Source: Hyphochytrium catenoides (taxonomy: Eukaryota > Protista > Hyphochytriomycota). From it: a stretch of 33,744 nt of DNA. Shown piece after piece: positions 11,769-32,928 of this stretch. A program made the translations under genes and the position numbers. The stretch is from positions 1 through 33,744 of the forward strand of contig FLMG01003455.1 in the NCBI GenBank assembly GCA_900088475.1. The letters run 5' to 3'. Within the stretch, counting starts at the first letter, position 1; each line of letters opens with the position of its first letter. Below the pieces are notes generated by a model. That model was not told the origin of the DNA and made no database searches. It saw nothing but the letters and a program-made list of their open reading frames with translations.

Positions 11769-13244
11769 ATGGCGCCTCCTCCCCAAAGAGAAGAACCTGG
11801 AGACTCTCTCTCCCTGGCAGATGAAATCAAGAGAGAAATTCCATGCAGAGCCGCTGCTCCGGAGCAGGATGGAAAGACTCTGGCCTCTTCTTCCTCTCCA
11901 TCTCCTCCTTCTTCATCTAGCACTTCTCAATCTTCTACGTCTCTTCTCTCCTCCTGCTTTCTCTCCGTCAAAAGCGTTGTCTGCAACCCTCAGATTCTCT
12001 ACAATGCCCTGCTGGTCTGCGGTCTGCTTCTCTCTCTCACTCTCTTCAACATTGTCATGGAATACGTGACGCGCATGTTCAAGCCTCTTCCGGAGACCAG
12101 CGTCATGCTCGTCATCTCTCTCTCGTACGGCCTCACAGGCTTCCTCGCTGCCAGAATAGGGAGAGAGATGAGATCAGAAGCCCCCGAGCGTGTCTTTTTC
12201 CTTGTCTCTCTCTCTTATATCCTCGGCTGGTTCTTCTCTTTCCGCTCTCTTCGCTTTGTCTCCTTCCCTGCTAGAGTCCTAGGTAAGATGTGCAAGCCCG
12301 TGCCCGTGATGGCCTTCGACTGTCTTTTGGGAAAGTTCTATCCTCTAAGAAAGTATGCGACCACTCTGTCTATCACCCTGGGCGCCTCTCTCTTCATGCT
12401 CTATAGCAAAGAGGGAGGGAGCCAAGGGAAGAGCACGCTGAACGGGATGGTGATGCTTCTACTCTCTCTTTGCTGCGATGGCGCCACGGGAGCGATGGAG
12501 AACAAGTTTATCCCGAAGTATAGCATTGGCCCCTTTGAGCTCCTTCAAGGGATCAATCGCTATGTCTTTCTCTTCTCTCTCCTTGCGATCCTTCTCTCTT
12601 CTTCGCTGCATGAACTCAAGCACTTCGTTGAGACCGCAGGCTTGTCTCTCCTTCTCCTCTGCGCGGCAGGATCTATTGGGCAAGTCTTCATCTTCATAGT
12701 CATCTGCAGGCTTGGGGCTCTGAATGCTGTCATTATAGGCACAGCGAGGAAGGTTATTACCGTGGCTGCGTCCATTCTTCTGTACGGACACTTCCTGACT
12801 TTCTTCCAGTTCATTGGGCTCTGCATCACCTTCTGTGCCCTCCTGGTTGACGTCTACTGCAGTACAAAGCGGTTAAGGAGAAAAGCGAATGCAGAGGAGA
12901 CAAGAGGGAAACAGAACTGCGGCGGAGTTGCTCCCAAGCAAGGAGTCGCTCTTCCTGCTCAAGTTTTTCAGCTAGAAAAGCCAGAGAGCGAGCATGTCCT
13001 AGAGATTAAGGAAGGAACCGAGAAAGAACGCGTAGGGGAGAACGTGGCCAAGCCCAAGCCTCTCGGAAGCGTCAAGAGCGAAGAGAAGCACCCTCTCCTC
13101 TCTAAACGTGAGTCAGAGGAGGAAGAAGGAGAGGAGAGCACTGTGCTGGATGTAGTGATCGACCCTCCTCAGCCTGAGAGTCTTGGACAAGTCTGCAGCC
13201 CGCGAAACAAGAGACTGGAAAGCTCAAGAGAAGCTGATGGCTGA
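11769..13244 (+). CDS. SLC35B1: UAA-family nucleotide(-sugar) transporter, SLC35B1/HUT1/UTr1-like, intronless, 491 aa
   Basis: Multiple TM helices plus family motifs SLRFVSFPARVLGKMCKPVPVM (cf. YPTQVLGKSCKPIPVM), LSLCCDGATG, GSIGQVFIF...LGAL...RKVITVAASILLYGH. Low-complexity N- and C-terminal extensions. Confidence 0.88.
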   Translation: MAPPPQREEPGDSLSLADEIKREIPCRAAAPEQDGKTLASSSSPSPPSSSSTSQSSTSLLSSCFLSVKSVVCNPQILYNALLVCGLLLSLTLFNIVMEYVTRMFKPLPETSVMLVISLSYGLTGFLAARIGREMRSEAPERVFFLVSLSYILGWFFSFRSLRFVSFPARVLGKMCKPVPVMAFDCLLGKFYPLRKYATTLSITLGASLFMLYSKEGGSQGKSTLNGMVMLLLSLCCDGATGAMENKFIPKYSIGPFELLQGINRYVFLFSLLAILLSSSLHELKHFVETAGLSLLLLCAAGSIGQVFIFIVICRLGALNAVIIGTARKVITVAASILLYGHFLTFFQFIGLCITFCALLVDVYCSTKRLRRKANAEETRGKQNCGGVAPKQGVALPAQVFQLEKPESEHVLEIKEGTEKERVGENVAKPKPLGSVKSEEKHPLLSKRESEEEEGEESTVLDVVIDPPQPESLGQVCSPRNKRLESSREADG

Positions 13245-13705: not shown

Positions 13706-16700
13706 CTAGCTTGGATAATACGCATCTCCGCTCTCATCCGTCACACCGAGAATCTCTGTCACCTTTGCCAGAAACCTCGCCCTATAATCCTTTGGCGGAA
13801 TGGCGCTCAAACCTTTTCCTTCTGCTCCCTTCAGAGTGATCTTTACCAGCCTCTCCAGTCTCTTCTGCAGCGTCCACGTCTGCAAAATGTCAATGATCCC
13901 AATAAAGTAGAAACCTGGGCCCGATATATAGTTAGCCCGCCTCATTCCTCTATGCATCTCCCCTCCGGATCGGCCAGGAGCTACAACTTCACCACCATCT
14001 CGGCCTAGTCCTTCTCCGCCTGAGGGTTCCCCTCCCTCCTGCATCTGCCTTTGTCTTCTTTCTTCAAGTCTCCTCTGTCTCAGCTGTTCAGAGAGGAGTC
14101 TACGCGTGAGGCCACCTGGCTGGGTGTCTCGCTCGTAGTTCTGGTTGATTGGCGCATCATAGTTGAAGACCTCGCCATACTGGGCAAGGACAAAGGAGAG
14201 AGACTTGGTGAGGGAGACGAAGAAGACTGATTATAAGAGAAAATCGGGGAAAGAGACAGAAAGGACAAGAATCGACGGGCAGAGATAGAAGATAAAAGCT
14301 CTCAACATTGATATAGCTAAGCCAAGCTCTAATAGCACCTCTTACCGCGAACGGATTTGCCTGAGCATCTGTCTGTGGCCCAACAGCGCTGTAAACCACG
14401 TCGTTGGAGTCATCCTTCGAGTTCTGGATCGTTGAGAAGCTGTCTCTGTACTCTCGCTCCTCGTCTTCCTCTCGTGTACTCTGCTGCTGCAGAGGCCGGG
14501 GATTGTCCACCTGGTAGGTGAGCTCACTGACCCCGATGAGCAACGAATAGTCCATGATTCCAACGTCGCGAAGCAGCTTGGTATCTTTCCTGATTTGATG
14601 GTAGGTGGACTGCGCCTCGGTCTCAGGAAGGCGCAGCTTTTCCTTGAGATCGTTGTCCTTCAGAACTTCATCTGGCTCATGGCCCAGCAGTCTCTCATCA
14701 CAATGCGACTTCACCCCGAAGATGTACTTTTGATTGCAGTGCCTGCAGGTCACCTTCTTGCCTCTCTTTGTGCGAGTCATATTGCGGTTCACCCAAGAGC
14801 CCTTGATGTCATACCTAGAGACGCAGAGCATCTCGATCAGCAGAGAAGGAGCGAAGACAGGGCTGGAAGAGGAAGACAGATGGGCTGAGCAGCCAAACAA
14901 AGAGAGCGATCAGGTGGGACAAGAAAGATAGAGTCTGGCACATGAGGAAAGATAAAGGAAAGGAGAAAGAATAGACAGGCCAGCCTCTGCCTATGGCCTT
15001 AAGACTCATTCACAAGGTTCACCTGTAGTGGATCTGTTTATCTGTATAGAAGAGGTTTGCCATGACGACGAAGCAGAAGGTCTGCCTGTACATCTTCAGG
15101 CTGTAACAGCCATAGATTCGGGTCAGCAACGTCTTCTTGTTCTCCACTAAGTACTGCCCATACTGCTCAGCAATGGACTGTAGGAAAGTGCATTCTTCTC
15201 CACTCATGCTCTTAACGATGAGAGTTTTGTCTTGAGAAAAGAACATGAACGCGCCTAAGCATCGGGAAGAAAAATATCAGCCATGTCAACGCTACACCAA
15301 AGTGCTTCGATTTCCTGCTTTCTCTCTCACTCTTTATAAACGGTGAAGATTCTCTTTCTCTCTCTCTCTTCGCACTTTTCTGAAGCTCAATTTCTCTCTC
15401 TTTTCTTCATTCTCCGTCTCGTTCCCTTACTCTGAAGCTCCGCCCTCACTCCATATCCCCCCTTTCTTCTCTCTCTGTCTCTGTCTTTCTCTCAGTCTCT
15501 TCGTCCTCTTTGTCTCTCCGTCTTTCTCTTTCTTTTCTAAAGGTTTACTCTTTGCCTGCTTACCACTTGCTCCTTCGCTGATTCTGGCCTTGGTCGTATG
15601 CTCCAGTGAGGCACTGAGTTTCGCATTGGTCATGCCAAAGCCCGCGCGGATGTGCTTGAAGACGTTATGCTTATAAGCCGTAAAAACAGGTCCACGCTTC
15701 ACTTGTTGTCCTGAGGGTGCTCGACCTCCCACTGGGGACGACCAACAATATGAGTAAACAGTAAGGAGATCGGTACACTATTAGACAGGAGGAGCATCAC
15801 TATGAGCGAAAGAAGTTGGAGAGTGCTCATGGCACAGCCCAGTGCTCAGCCAGTGACCACGAGGCGACAACAATGGGAAAGAGCGAGAAAGTATCGGTGG
15901 GACCGCAACTGGGCGGATAAATATATAAGGTCCTAGCTAGTGCTAGCAAGACATAAGACCTACCTTCACCTCTCTCTGTGCGCGCCGCCAGGTAAAAATC
16001 CTTCCTGTCTGTGGTCTCAACATCCCCTGCCTCCTCCAGCGCAAGACGGATGCCCGACACCGTGTTATAAAGGACCTCTTCCCTTAGCGCCGTGTTTACT
16101 TGTGGGTCCAGTGAGTTGTCCTGTTCCGCTTCCCCTCCAGCTCCCTCTCCTTGGGCCCCCTTCCGTCGGCCGCACTGTCTAAAAGCATCCAGTACGTCCG
16201 AGAACTTGAAGTCATTCACCAGGAACCACACTAGGAAGTCCACATAGCCTTGAGCGCAAATAACGTAGTTGACCGCCTGAAAAGCTTTGGATTTATTGAG
16301 CTCCTTCGCTTCATTGTTCTCATCCGCGGCCATGAGGTTGAGGTCCACAGTTGAGAGATATATGACATAGACGAAGACGAGGATCACCCAGTATCCAGTG
16401 ATAAAAGACACGTACGTCGAAGACACGCGAATGATCTCTCTCCTGACCTCGATGGTCTTTTGAATGCCGTCTCTCAATCGGACCAGGGAGATCACCACGA
16501 TGACAATGGAGAAGACAATGAAGAGGATAACCCAGATGTAGAGGAACGCCCAAGCGGTGATGTTGGCGGTAAACTTGTCGCTTTCACCCTCCTGCACGGG
16601 ATCAGCGCGAGCCCAACAGAAAGAGACAGTGGACTGCCCTGCATAGTTTGCAGCAACAAGTACGATGGACATGAACAGAGGGAAGCCCCAGGAGAAGATG

Positions 16701-17651
16701 TGATACTTCTTCACGTTAGCTTTAAAGTTCGTGAAGGGGTTCGTTAAAGAGAGGTACAGATCAACAGACAGACAGAGGAACCAGCAAAGTGAGGAGAGGA
16801 TGAGGAACTCAGAGATGGCTCCCAATGCGCGGCAGAGATCATCGTATCCTCCTCCTTCTCCGTTTTGAGAAAGAGGCGCACATGCTTGATCCTCAGTTTC
16901 TCTCGTCAGGATACACCGTAAGGGAGCCTCTCCAACCACTCTGATAGCAAAGAGAAGGTCTATCATTGACCGATAGAAGAGAAGCGGGTTGGGATGTCTT
17001 CTGTTCTTCTTCTTGCCAAGATAGGAAAAGAGAATCAGAAGGGCGGAGATGAGAGTGAGGAGAGAGCCAAACATAGCTCCAGGCGAGATATAGACAAAAG
17101 ACACCTGAAGACCAAGTGCCAAGGTCACCACCAACATCAGCAGCACAACCACTTGAGGGACAATGTTCCTCTTTGCCACCGAAAACCATCCTTTTCTCTG
17201 TCCTCCTGAGCCCTCTTCTTGCCCGCCCTCTACATTATGCATGTGCGCGGGCGCTGCACCGCCTCCTGGCCCGTGATACCGGGGGGTCTCGTTCCTTTGA
17301 TACGGCGGACCTTCAAGACGGAGGTGACGTGTTTGACGTTAAGAAAGAGCTGACGACCAGGAACAGGTTCCGCCTCGAAAGGCAAACAAAGCATTCAGGG
17401 CACAGAGCTTGAGACTCTACCCTAAGGAATTAGAAAAGAATGAAGGGAGCCAGCGAAGGAGAAAAGCGGACAGTCCTCTTAGCAGAGAACTTACCATGAC
17501 CATCATCTTGAGGCCGGTACCCAGTCGCAGTGTCCACAGGTAGGGATCCAACAGTTGCGATGGTGCCAGAAGGTCTTGGACCGTGGGCTCTTCCTTCATA
17601 TCCAGTGACATCATATGGTCTCCTACTTATTGCGCCATCTGGCTGCTGCAT
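13706..17651 (-). CDS. GPCR-PIPK fusion: cAMP-receptor-like 7TM domain fused to a phosphatidylinositol phosphate kinase domain, ~948 aa
   Basis: Hand-spliced exons (minus strand): 17651-17495, 17310-15964, 15731-15564, 15254-15023, 14814-14346, 14179-13706; all GT-AG and phase-consistent. 7TM motifs: RRHPNPLLFYRSMIDLLF, LCRALG...SSLCWFLCLSVDLY, YHIFSWG, FCW, QGYVDFLVW. Linker ALREEVLYNTVSGI = LR(x)9GI. PIPK motifs: FKHIR, EGASGAFMFFSQDKTLIVK, TLLTRIYG, VVMANLF, YDIKGS, LKDNDL, MDYSLLIG, YFIGIIDILQ, SAIPPKDYRARF. The first exon is less certain; the alternative start is ATG 17242 (~873 aa). Confidence 0.92.
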
Positions 17652-20792: not shown

Positions 20793-23111
20793 TTACTTGC
20801 GAGAACGACCGCCTTCCTTGAGCAACAGGAGATGTCGAATATTCGGCTCCACTTCTAATGATGGCATCTCTTCACGCAAAAACACCTCTGCCCTTCTGAT
20901 TTCTCTAGCTTTGATGTACGCCTTCAGCAACTCAAAGCAGCTGATCTCGTCAGGACCCACGCCAGCCTCAGGCATGCCCTTGTGCAAGATCTCCTCCATT
21001 GCCTGCCAGTTTCCCATAGATCCATAGCCCCGCAAAAGCAGGTTGAAGTGAATATCGCTTGGCTTCAATCCTAACGATGGCATCTCTTCACGCAAGAACA
21101 CCTCTGCCTTCTCGAGCTCTCCTGACTTGATGTACGCCTTCAGCAACGCGGAGCAGCTGATCTCATCAGGATCCACGCCAGCCTCAGGCATACGCTTGTA
21201 CAGGAGTTCCTCCATTGCATGCCAGTTATCCATAGATCCATAGCCTCCCAGGAGCAGGTTGAAGTGAATATGACTTGGCTTCACTCCAAGCGATGGAACT
21301 TCGTCACAAAGAAATACCTCTGCCTTTTCGAGCTCTCCAGCCTTGATGTACGCCTTCAGCAGCGCAGAGCAACTGATCTCATCAGGACGCACGCCAACTT
21401 CAGACATCTGCTGGTACAGGATCTCTTCCATTGCCTGCCAGTTGCCCATAGATTCATAGCCTCCCAGAAGCAGGTTGAAGTAAATAAGGAGAGGCTGCAC
21501 TCCTAACATCGGTATTCCCTCGAGCAGGAACACCTCCCCCCTCTCGAGCTCTCCAGCCTTGATGTACGCCTTCAGCAACGCAGAGCAGCTGATCTCGTTA
21601 GGATTTAGGCCAACCTCAGGCATGCGCTTGTACAGGATCTCCTCCATTGCCTGCCAGTTGCCCATAGATTCATAGCCTCCCAGGAGCAGGTTGAAGTGAA
21701 TATGGCTTGGCTTCACTCCTAGGGACGGAACCTCCTCACAAAGGAACACCTTTGCCCTCTCGAGCTCTCCAGCCTTGATGTACGCCTTCAGCAGCGCAGA
21801 GCAGCTGATCTTATTAGGATTGACGCCAACTTCAGACATCTGCTGGTACAGGATCTCCTCCATTGCCTGCCAGTTGCCCATAGATTCATAGCCTCCCAGA
21901 AGCAGGTTGAAGTAAATAGGGAAAGGCTGCACTCCTAACATCGGTATTCCCTCGAGCAGGAACTCCTCCCCCTTCTCGAGCTCTCCAGCCTTGATGTACG
22001 CCTTCAGCAACGCAGAGCAGCTGATCTCATCAGGACGCACGCCCATCTCAGGCATGCGCTGGTACAGGACTTCCTCCATCGCCTGCCAGTTGCCCATAGA
22101 TCCATAGCCTCCCAGGAGGAGGTTGAAGTAGATTTCACTTGGCTTCACTCCTAGGGACGGAACTTTCTCACAAAGAAACACCTCTGCCCCCTTGAACTCT
22201 CCAGCCTTGATGTACGCCTTCAGCAGCGCAGAGCAGCTGATCTCATCAGGACGCACGCCAGCCTCAGGCATGCGCTTGTACAGGATCTCCTCCACTGCCT
22301 GCAAGTTGCCCATAGATCCATGGCCTCCCAGGAGAAGGTTGAAATGAATAACATTTGGCTTCAATCCTAGCGACGGAAATTCCTCATGGAAGAACATTTC
22401 TGCCCTCTCGAGCTCTCCAGCCTTGATGTACGCCTTCAGTACCTCAGTGCAGCTGATCTCATTGGGTTTCAAGCCAGCCTCAGGCATGCGCTTGTGCAGG
22501 ATCTCCTCCACTGCCTGCCAGTTGCCCACAGATCCATAGCCTCCCAGAAGAAGGTTGAAACGAGTGAGAGTTGGCTTCACTCCAAGCGACGGAGCTTCCT
22601 CACAAAGAAACGCCTCCGCCTTCTCGAGCTCTCCAGCCTTGATGTACGCCTTCAGTACCTTAGAGCAAGTGTGACTATTCGGCTTCACGCCAGCCTCAGG
22701 CATCTGCTGGTACAGCACCCTCTCGACGGCGTCAAGGTTTCTCGCTGCCCCATACTTCGCGATTTGTCGAGTGAAGCTCGCAACTGGAGGTGGCTCGCTT
22801 CCATCGTCCGGCATATCCCTTTCCGTATACAGATGAAGGGGACGAGTCCTCCCTCCCTTCTCCGCGTTATTGGACAGAGCCTTGCCATAGATTTCTCCCC
22901 ATTGGCCCAGCCCTTGGCCTGAGCATCGCTCCCTCAGAGAGGTCCATGCCACTTGGCTGGCGAGGGCAGTGTAAGTCCTCACGCTGATGGCCTTCCTGCA
23001 AGGCTGTGATGTTATCATCCTCTTCCAGCTCGCATTGACCCAGCTCAAAGAGTAATTGGCTCGGCATCCAGTTATCACACCCGAACGTGCATTCAGAATG
23101 GGCGTGACCAT
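20793..23111 (-). CDS. Pentatricopeptide repeat (PPR) protein, 18 motifs of 36 aa, probable mitochondrial presequence, intronless, ~772 aa
   Basis: PPR-like consensus repeated 18 times (xxxFNLLLGGY...GN..A.EE.L...M...G..PD/N and xxSCSALLKAYIKAGE.E.A..FL....P.LGV.P). First in-frame ATG is at 23111 (the track start 23147 is GTG). The N-terminal ~60 aa are Arg/Ser/Thr-rich and lack acidic residues. Confidence 0.92.
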   Translation of the reverse strand: MVTPILNARSGVITGCRANYSLSWVNASWKRMITSQPCRKAISVRTYTALASQVAWTSLRERCSGQGLGQWGEIYGKALSNNAEKGGRTRPLHLYTERDMPDDGSEPPPVASFTRQIAKYGAARNLDAVERVLYQQMPEAGVKPNSHTCSKVLKAYIKAGELEKAEAFLCEEAPSLGVKPTLTRFNLLLGGYGSVGNWQAVEEILHKRMPEAGLKPNEISCTEVLKAYIKAGELERAEMFFHEEFPSLGLKPNVIHFNLLLGGHGSMGNLQAVEEILYKRMPEAGVRPDEISCSALLKAYIKAGEFKGAEVFLCEKVPSLGVKPSEIYFNLLLGGYGSMGNWQAMEEVLYQRMPEMGVRPDEISCSALLKAYIKAGELEKGEEFLLEGIPMLGVQPFPIYFNLLLGGYESMGNWQAMEEILYQQMSEVGVNPNKISCSALLKAYIKAGELERAKVFLCEEVPSLGVKPSHIHFNLLLGGYESMGNWQAMEEILYKRMPEVGLNPNEISCSALLKAYIKAGELERGEVFLLEGIPMLGVQPLLIYFNLLLGGYESMGNWQAMEEILYQQMSEVGVRPDEISCSALLKAYIKAGELEKAEVFLCDEVPSLGVKPSHIHFNLLLGGYGSMDNWHAMEELLYKRMPEAGVDPDEISCSALLKAYIKSGELEKAEVFLREEMPSLGLKPSDIHFNLLLRGYGSMGNWQAMEEILHKGMPEAGVGPDEISCFELLKAYIKAREIRRAEVFLREEMPSLEVEPNIRHLLLLKEGGRSRK
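20841..22784 (-). repeat. Coding tandem repeat: 9 x 216 bp (A+B PPR pair)
   Basis: Blocks such as 'ctccagccttgatgtacgccttcagc' and 'cagttgcccatagat' recur at exact 216-bp spacing. Confidence 0.95.
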
Positions 23112-23745
23112 TGTGAACGTGAAGCAGCAGCAGACCTTTGCACGCACTCTATAAAAGAGCTTAAAGAATCACAGAGAGACCACTCTACCATCACCTATTT
23201 CTTCCTAATAAACGGTGATAGTCCCAAGTTCTGCGCACTAGGTCATAGCTACGATCGAGGGCTGACAGACCGTAAACGATGGCTCGGGTTTCTGTCCTTC
23301 AAACCAGTGCTGACTTGGGTCATTACAACGCTAGACTTGCTGTGCTGAAGGCATCCAGTCATCTGCTCTCGCCGACTGATTGCTCTGTAGGAAGTGCTGA
23401 TGTTCCGGTGACCTGGTAGTGAGGACTTGGCTGTTCATCAGCTTGATGCTTGAGAGGCGCGGAGGCGGACAGCAGCAGCAATGCATCCTTTGACGGTAGC
23501 CGCAGCCTCACAGCCTCACTCACCACCTCCATCTGTGCCAGAGAGGCCGCAAATCAATCAGAAGTGCCTTCAGCTTTCCTGTGCTACCACTGGGGGAGGC
23601 CTGCCCTCTGAATAAGAGGGATTACGGAATCAAGGCCGTATAAGCGGAGATTTATGTAGGATACATACTCTCCTATTCAGGATCGATCTGATACGCATAT
23701 GCCCTTCAAACAGCTGCATTCTTCTGGGGTCTTCACGAGGAAGTT

Positions 23746-25668: not shown

Positions 25669-32928
<7,260 letters not shown>

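Follow-up and report, generated by a model that had tools for sequence, protein, structure and literature searches.

Does one locus of Hyphochytrium catenoides encode a single protein in which a seven-transmembrane (7TM) receptor is joined to a phosphoinositide kinase (PIPK), or does it hold a receptor and a kinase that are made, or lost, separately? Such fusions, the GPCR-PIPKs, have long been puzzling as receptors wired straight to a lipid kinase whose activity is unproven. The window, the whole stretch of DNA analysed here, spans 33,744 nucleotides, and an initial annotation had proposed that a 7TM region within it splices in frame to a complete PIPK domain. Our analysis indicates that the minus-strand locus is very probably one intact protein-coding gene of five exons, encoding a GPCR-PIPK (a type IV PIP kinase). 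Searches were conducted exon by exon, and a tree was constructed from the receptor half. A neighbouring transporter ORF gave matches of only 30–39% in the homologue search; the single match bearing an organism name was from a diatom, which agrees with a stramenopile host at no finer level.

The gene model comprises the following parts, listed in the direction of transcription.
17495–17651, minus strand: possible extra 5′ coding exon (putative), with ATG at 17651 and donor CATG/GTAAGT after 17495
15964–17242, minus strand: exon 1, the receptor half, with the N-terminal hydrophobic helix, 7TM bundle, helix 8 and linker (Pfam 7tm_2)
15732–15963, minus strand: intron 1, boundary of receptor half and kinase half, GTAGGT...CCCCAG, 232 bases
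15564–15731, minus strand: exon 2, linker end and start of the PIPK domain (VFTAYKHNVFKHIRAGFG ... SEGAS; tblastn, alignment)
15023–15254, minus strand: exon 3, remaining glycine loop (G-AFMFF) and catalytic lysine in IVKS at 15208–15219 (Pfam PIP5K)
14346–14814, minus strand: exon 4, DIKGS, Cys/His insert, LKDNDL, MDYSLL and start of the variable insert (Pfam PIP5K)
13706–14179 (coding 14179–13709), minus strand: exon 5, remaining variable insert, GIIDILQ, activation loop and stop (Pfam PIP5K)
13706–13708, minus strand: stop codon TAG

When the minus strand was spliced in silico, the exons joined into 2619 bases, or 873 codons, with no internal stop or frameshift, and all four introns (166–309 bases) were of the GT..AG type. 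Together with the Pfam matches of both halves, this supports the proposed in-frame splice; at its junction, 15964/15731, a GT..AG intron of 232 bases keeps the frame. Intron 1 contains stops in all three frames, and its length is not divisible by 3. Another acceptor, 21 bases downstream, also keeps the frame and would start exon 2 at 15710; because the linker is poorly conserved at this point, homology leaves the exact exon 1/exon 2 junction unfixed. When seven full-length homologues were used as tblastn queries, six matched all five exons in order, as full-length oomycete GPCR-PIPKs do, and neighbouring matches met at the junctions in query coordinates (555/555 and 632/631); the seventh missed the small exon 2. 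The split codons yield conserved residues, namely the G of SEGASGAF at the 5′ end of exon 3 and the R of IHxRYDIKGS in exon 4. The receptor–kinase fusion is thus predicted from comparison and frame logic.

The predicted protein has about 873 residues, or about 948 with the putative extra 5′ exon. Exon 1 is counted here from the ATG at 17242, the acceptor at 17310 being an alternative start. The more distant 5′ end suggested earlier, at ATG 17651, keeps the frame through 17495/17310 but needs one more intron, and its exon is putative: it is in frame with the main exon only via an acceptor such as 17310, and homology lends it no support.

Two membrane features were delineated in exon 1.
17105–17164, minus strand: extra hydrophobic helix before TM1, residues 27–46 (hydropathy, model)
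16217–17083, minus strand: seven-helix core, residues 54–342 (AlphaFold2 model, alignment)

The ORF at 17242..15827 matches Pfam 7tm_2 (9e-12; 45 bits against a cut-off of 20.6), and an exhaustive search with the receptor exon alone as query recovered 614 relatives with a best E-value of 1e-49; a Pfam PIP5K domain is present in 35 of the best 46 of these 614. A word-index protein search with the 471-residue ORF returned no match, a blank that is uninformative because the length window of this search leaves out most full-length fusions. The AlphaFold2 model of the receptor exon (pLDDT 81, pTM 0.83) contains helices at residues 54–76, 85–113, 131–167, 173–197, 228–255, 261–306 and 319–342, followed by helix 8, and solved GPCRs head its Foldseek matches, with Frizzled, Smoothened, class A and adhesion receptors at the top. 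According to the alignment, residues retained across the family include RHPNPL after TM1, DLxxSLTNPF in TM3, CW in extracellular loop 2 and G..D..VW in TM7. The helix preceding TM1, also helical in the model, has a mean Kyte–Doolittle value of 2.63 across 19 residues, and the same alignment columns are hydrophobic in homologues; it may act either as a signal anchor or as a cleaved signal peptide. With its net charge of +5, the loop following TM1 is assigned to the cytoplasmic side, and so, therefore, is the kinase.

The initial annotation had described this region as cAMP-receptor-like. A weak signal for Dicty_CAR, the Dictyostelium cAMP receptor family, does exist, but at 18.3 bits, over residues 146–214 only, it falls below the curated cut-off of 21, and a Dicty_CAR match at E<=0.001 occurs in only 6 of the best 46 of the 614 relatives. 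Membership in the cAMP-receptor family was rejected on that score, and the receptor half is better described as a GPCR-PIPK-class 7TM.

Between the two halves lies the linker that gives the family its signature.
16049–16087, minus strand: LR(x)9GI linker motif, exact translation LREEVLYNTVSGI

The motif is thus found by exact minus-strand translation at 16087–16049, where it had been reported, and it sits inside a wider conserved block that begins with PQVN (16049–16111) and matches, in the alignment, the consensus PQLNxALRxEVLxYTTxGI drawn from 28 relatives. The region is helical in the AlphaFold2 model (residues 381–404). LR(x)9GI is regarded as diagnostic of GPCR-PIPKs (PMC5784254, PMC12716839) and is reported only from them (PMC5784254). 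The GPCR-PIPK identity first put forward for the locus is therefore supported by the 7TM class, this linker, canonical in-frame introns and the intact catalytic motifs of the kinase half.

The principal motifs of the kinase half are located as follows.
14796–14810, minus strand: DIKGS
14679–14747, minus strand: Cys/His insert, CRHC...C...H
14538–14555, minus strand: MDYSLL
13880–13900, minus strand: GIIDILQ
13850–13867, minus strand: activation loop with KRLE

The three larger downstream ORF pieces each match Pfam PIP5K, at 1.5e-22 (exon 3), 5.5e-22 (exon 4) and 6.4e-14 (exon 5), and their profile positions are consecutive (20–94, 94–207 and 230–287), so that the three exons reach from 20 to 287 of 288. 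The small ORF piece at 15427–15732, which holds exon 2, had no Pfam match by itself but lines up with the beginning of the homologues' kinase domain. The glycine loop, IVK lysine, DIKGS, MDYSLL, GIIDIL and the KRLE of the activation loop are all intact. Exon 3 IVK(S) aligns to IIK(T) of solved PIP5K1A (5e-6), the MDYSLL region matches PIP4K2B, and the GIIDIL segment of exon 5 aligns to the solved kinases PIKfyve and PIP4K2C. Judged by its motifs, the PIPK domain is complete and predicted to be catalytically competent. The specificity position of the activation loop is Glu in type I enzymes and Ala in type II enzymes, and in swap experiments between the two types this position reportedly sets substrate choice. 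In the alignment, the Glu of KRLE stands opposite an Ala of KKAAH in PIP4K2C, and we take it to occupy the type I position; on this basis, conversion of PI4P to PI(4,5)P2 is the most likely predicted activity. The CxxC...C...H insert after DIKGS could be a module that binds metal; roughly half of the relatives with a kinase share it.

Taken together, these features suggest a protein that would begin with a hydrophobic signal or anchor helix, continue as a seven-helix receptor of the GPCR-PIPK class, and extend through a cytoplasmic tail, in which helix 8 is followed by the conserved LR(x)9GI helix, into the complete PIP kinase domain. As this tail runs from the cytoplasmic side into the kinase, the latter would lie against the membrane's inner face. 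When the 7TM bundle senses a signal, the tethered kinase might then change its position or its activity, with the helix 8/LRxGI segment acting as the relay, and the outcome would be a local rise in PI(4,5)P2. The knock-out and silencing phenotypes of Dictyostelium and Phytophthora relatives suggest that its roles could include chemotaxis, phagocytosis and development (PMC6033456, PMC12716839), in a family for which experimental proof of a phospholipid role is still missing (PMC12716839).

The fusion may also be real while the kinase is not gated directly by the 7TM half, a reading to which we assign a substantial but clearly minor probability: the receptor half could anchor a constitutive kinase to a membrane or organelle, it could signal to the kinase by way of heterotrimeric G proteins, or cleavage could set the kinase free. 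Helix 8 and the LRxGI helix are about 20 poorly modelled residues apart, and we know of no ligand for any GPCR-PIPK family member. These alternatives were left open in earlier work (PMC6033456), and Dictyostelium RpkA is reported to reside not at the surface, like a classic receptor, but on phagosomes and endosomal vesicles (PMC12716839). Nevertheless, distantly related eukaryotes show strong conservation of both the 7TM residues and the LRxGI helix, which argues for a specific role of the linker and for a receptor half that does more than anchor. We thus favour a kinase controlled by the receptor to which it is tethered.

A receptor without its kinase is conceivable from the reading frame, as reading through the first donor leaves the ORF open for 45 more codons and gives a 471-residue receptor-only protein ending at the stop 15827–15829. 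The locus would then yield two products, this protein and a separate or unexpressed downstream kinase remnant, a division that we regard as very unlikely. Several database relatives of about 410–525 residues do lack a PIPK domain, and the choanoflagellate group GPRch1 has lost it (PMC12716839), but the short database entries are mostly metagenome or run assemblies in which gene calls break at introns. The only public RNA run with matching sequence (5% of sampled words) provided one 235-base contig at 17083–17311, away from the receptor/kinase junction, and no contig in that run crosses the kinase junctions; the contig end at 17311 adjoins the acceptor at 17310, a fit to the putative 5′ exon that is suggestive only. 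Against two products, no motif is missing from the intact kinase exons, the exon 2 frame has no ATG upstream of the conserved start of the kinase, the two halves lie just 232 bases apart, and LR(x)9GI has been reported only in GPCR-PIPKs (PMC5784254). Moreover, all four introns contain stop codons and retention of three of them shifts the frame, so the kinase exons are readable only after splicing, in keeping with one spliced gene.

A decaying or silent copy within a multi-copy family is highly improbable, for although the one public run gave no sign of expression across the kinase junctions, its contig lies over the 5′ part with an end that fits a splice acceptor, and the 873 codons free of stops and frameshifts, the four canonical splice-site pairs and the intact catalytic and family motifs all speak for an intact gene. 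Both the pseudogene and the receptor-only gene with a kinase remnant were accordingly rejected, the kinase exons being open with intact motifs.

As the design of a receptor joined to a lipid kinase is already catalogued across many protists, the gene represents a new member and not a new kind of protein, and existing knowledge of the family is unchanged by it. No report of GPCR-PIPKs in the Hyphochytrium lineage was found in the literature searched, and neither term, GPCR or PIPK, occurs in the genome paper on Hyphochytrium. Novelty had been said to depend on the host lineage, and this is indeed so: the host appears to be a relative of the oomycetes, in which the family is expected. The gene provides a clean, intact example from a lineage adjoining the oomycetes and outside the published surveys consulted; it could help to date the oomycete expansion of the family, and, as its host is not a pathogen, it is a convenient origin of protein for biochemistry. 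More tentatively, and with the balance against it, the copy may be orthologous to particular oomycete classes, and the Cys/His insert and N-terminal membrane helix may have regulatory functions, so far uncharacterised, in type IV PIPKs.

The closest known systems are the oomycete GPCR-PIPKs (Phytophthora GK1–GK12, classes D1–D12; type IV PIPKs), which share the 7TM class, LR(x)9GI and the PIPK domain, along with the DLKGS-type, MDYSLL and IID motifs and a CxxC...C...H insert after the DLKGS motif. The best named matches come from Pythium insidiosum, Hyaloperonospora, Bremia, Globisporangium, Aphanomyces and Saprolegnia, and identity to oomycete GK proteins is about 29–36% in the receptor half, with the nearest named relatives at about 35%, and 38–67% in the kinase exons. 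The Hyphochytrium gene has its four introns of 166–309 bases, and its host is a relative of the oomycetes, not one of them. Placement within the family, which had been proposed as a check, was achieved in part: a quick tree of the receptor half sets the gene in a clade, supported at SH-aLRT 91, in which every labelled member is an oomycete, but it singles out no oomycete class as closest.

Dictyostelium discoideum RpkA, the founding functional example, is the same fusion of a 7TM receptor with a PIP kinase, with roles in cell-density sensing, phagocytosis and anti-bacterial defence (PMC3206951, PMC6033456). It belongs to a distant lineage (Amoebozoa), where it is a single copy, and is absent among the labelled best matches obtained here. 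The type I PIP5Ks (solved zebrafish and human PIP5K1A) and type II PIP4Ks align with the Hyphochytrium kinase in three places: the strand with the catalytic lysine, MDYSLL, and the IID segment with the activation loop. Whereas those enzymes are soluble, the Hyphochytrium kinase is tethered to a receptor, and it has two inserts: one of about 25 residues, rich in Cys and His, follows DIKGS, and a long variable one, acidic and Gly-rich, precedes the IID segment.

A row of open ORF pieces at 13706-17651 (minus strand) can be assembled into a predicted five-exon gene encoding a GPCR-PIPK (type IV PIPK). It is an intact and standard member of a family that is already well described, and its presence in this lineage is expected. 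The gene model comprises the following features:

17242 (ATG) to 15964, minus strand: exon 1, receptor half and linker
15963 to 15732, minus strand: intron 1, 232 bases
15731 to 15564, minus strand: exon 2, start of the kinase domain
15563 to 15255, minus strand: intron 2, 309 bases
15254 to 15023, minus strand: exon 3
15022 to 14815, minus strand: intron 3, 208 bases
14814 to 14346, minus strand: exon 4
14345 to 14180, minus strand: intron 4, 166 bases
14179 to 13709, minus strand: exon 5, followed by the stop codon TAG at 13708-13706

Each of the four introns has GT at its 5' end and AG at its 3' end, and the summed exons (2619 bases, 873 codons) contain no internal stop. Since the lengths of introns 1, 3 and 4 are not divisible by three and intron 2 carries stops in every frame, the kinase exons are readable only once spliced. 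Intron sizes of 166-309 bases agree with the mean of 208 bases published for introns of the Hyphochytrium genome (PMC5795050).

The initial annotation described a 7TM receptor spliced in frame to a complete PIPK, an observation confirmed by the domains, the reading frame and the ordered matches of homologues. Searches, fold prediction and tree construction were conducted exon by exon. When seven full-length homologues were compared with the window using tblastn, six matched the five exons collinearly on a single strand, and the remaining one had no match to the small exon 2; query coordinates adjoin at the junctions, as at 555/555 and 632/631 in the Pythium insidiosum protein. In an exon-by-exon alignment, the codon interrupted by intron 2 restores a conserved G (SEGAS-G-AFMFF), and the one interrupted by intron 3 restores a conserved R (IHx-R-YDIKGS). 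Only 232 bases separate receptor from kinase, and the exon 2 frame offers no ATG upstream of the point where the conserved kinase sequence begins. Homology does not fix the junction between exons 1 and 2, because the linker is variable there. An alternative in-frame acceptor lies 21 bases downstream of the first and would start exon 2 at 15710 instead of 15731, leaving the junction position uncertain by seven residues; the two acceptors could produce two isoforms differing by those linker residues.

The upstream ATG at 17651 originally proposed can be joined in frame through a donor at 17495 and an acceptor at 17310, which would extend the protein to 948 codons, but it requires an extra intron, and the 5' exon is putative. 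In one public run, in which 5% of sampled words were present, the sole contig recovered (235 bases, at 17083-17311) is identical over 229 letters and ends at 17311 with six letters unplaced. This end lies one base past the in-frame AG acceptor (exon start 17310), as expected for spliced RNA with an upstream exon, and is only a hint.

The largest piece, ORF 17242..15827, matches Pfam 7tm_2 at 9e-12, better than the curated cut-off, with weak 7tm_1 and Dicty_CAR matches that fall under theirs. Used by itself as the query of an exhaustive, profile-free search, exon 1 retrieved 614 relatives (best 1e-49, 36% identity); as no match exceeds 36% identity, the protein library searched contains no gene model for this protein. 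Among the 46 best of these relatives, 35 contain Pfam PIP5K, and the remainder are mostly short entries from metagenome or run assemblies. The residues that the alignment marks as conserved across the family are all kept here: RHPNPL after TM1, DLxxSLTNPF in TM3, CW in outer loop 2 and G..D..VW in TM7. AlphaFold2 produced a confident exon 1 model (pLDDT 81, pTM 0.83) with seven long helices and a helix 8 (347-359), for which Foldseek returned solved GPCRs throughout, Frizzled-7 first and then class A receptors, CD97 and Smoothened. With its net charge of +5, the loop after TM1 indicates the usual orientation of TM1-7 and a cytoplasmic kinase. An additional strongly hydrophobic helix (residues 27-46; 17105-17164, minus strand) lies about eight residues ahead of TM1, and the corresponding alignment columns are hydrophobic in homologues too. 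This helix may act as a signal anchor, in which case the protein would have eight membrane helices and its N-terminus in the cytosol, or it may be a signal peptide that is cleaved off.

The linker reported in the initial annotation, LREEVLYNTVSGI, is the exact translation of 16087-16049. The block PQxN.ALR.EVL....GI, conserved in the family alignment, is present here, and AlphaFold2 modelled the LRxGI block as helical (381-404), with a poorly modelled stretch between helix 8 and the block. LRxGI was defined as the GPCR-PIPK hallmark by van den Hoogen et al., who predicted that such proteins would turn up in more species, and a 2025 eLife survey (PMC12716839) confirms LR(x)9GI as diagnostic and the 7TM domain alone as sufficient to find the family. 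The interpretation of the gene as a GPCR-PIPK with an intact LRxGI linker is supported.

The named best matches are oomycetes (Pythium insidiosum, Globisporangium, Bremia, Hyaloperonospora, Aphanomyces, Saprolegnia and Phytophthora ramorum). A quick maximum-likelihood tree built from the receptor half places the window sequence in a clade (SH-aLRT 91) in which every labelled member is an oomycete, and does not fix its position inside that clade. More distant relatives come from Platysulcus, Rhodelphis and a choanoflagellate. The 46 proteins scanned for PIP5K as best matches to the receptor half include one from Rhodelphis marinus (1038 aa) and one from Platysulcus tardus (724 aa), the latter a deep-branching stramenopile. 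Platysulcus is not mentioned in the GPCR-PIPK family surveys consulted. In van den Hoogen et al., Aureococcus was the only stramenopile besides the oomycetes with a GPCR-PIPK. No link between Hyphochytrium and PIPKs was found in the searchable literature, including the genome paper (PMC5795050).

Several other genes or gene pieces of the window were also identified. A single-exon UAA/SLC35B-type nucleotide-sugar transporter gene (11769-13244, plus strand; Pfam UAA 6e-24) is convergent with the GPCR-PIPK gene, about 460 bases apart from stop to stop; its best database relatives share 30-39% identity, the sole organism-named match being a diatom. A long ORF at 20793-23147 (minus) consists almost entirely of pentatricopeptide repeats (PPR_3 2e-62, PPR_2 4e-57). 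Two adjoining ORF pieces with weak kinesin motor and kinesin-associated matches (28330-29953, minus) and a C2 domain piece close to the window start (2155-2793, plus) probably belong to other genes with several exons.

Functional data are limited to Dictyostelium RpkA and the Phytophthora GK genes (PMC6033456), and evidence for a lipid-signalling role of the family is described as still missing (PMC12716839). Our best guess is that the 7TM receptor would control local PI(4,5)P2 synthesis, with control passing via helix 8 and the LRxGI helix to the kinase. A serious alternative is that the kinase is under indirect control, or that the receptor half is a mere anchor.

Three downstream ORF pieces match Pfam PIP5K (1.5e-22, 5.5e-22 and 6.4e-14) over consecutive profile positions (20-94, 94-207 and 230-287 of 288). 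The small piece at 15427-15732 has no Pfam match alone, and alignment to homologues assigns it to the beginning of the kinase domain. The catalytic elements align as follows:

Glycine loop, spanning the exon 2/3 junction: family consensus
IVK lysine, exon 3: IIK of solved PIP5K1A
DIKGS, exon 4: family consensus
MDYSLL, exon 4: PIP4K2B
GIIDIL and activation loop, exon 5: PIKfyve and PIP4K2C

After DIKGS lies a Cys/His-rich insert, CRHC...C...H (14679-14747, minus strand), a candidate metal-binding module; 37 of the 70 relatives having the D-x-KGS motif match a loose pattern for it, the aligned PIP4K2B chain is without it, and cysteine and zinc go unmentioned in the main paper on the family. The Glu of the KRLE motif is aligned with an Ala of PIP4K2C. 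In swaps between type I and type II enzymes this position reportedly bears on substrate specificity, and the Glu points to a predicted PI4P 5-kinase specificity.
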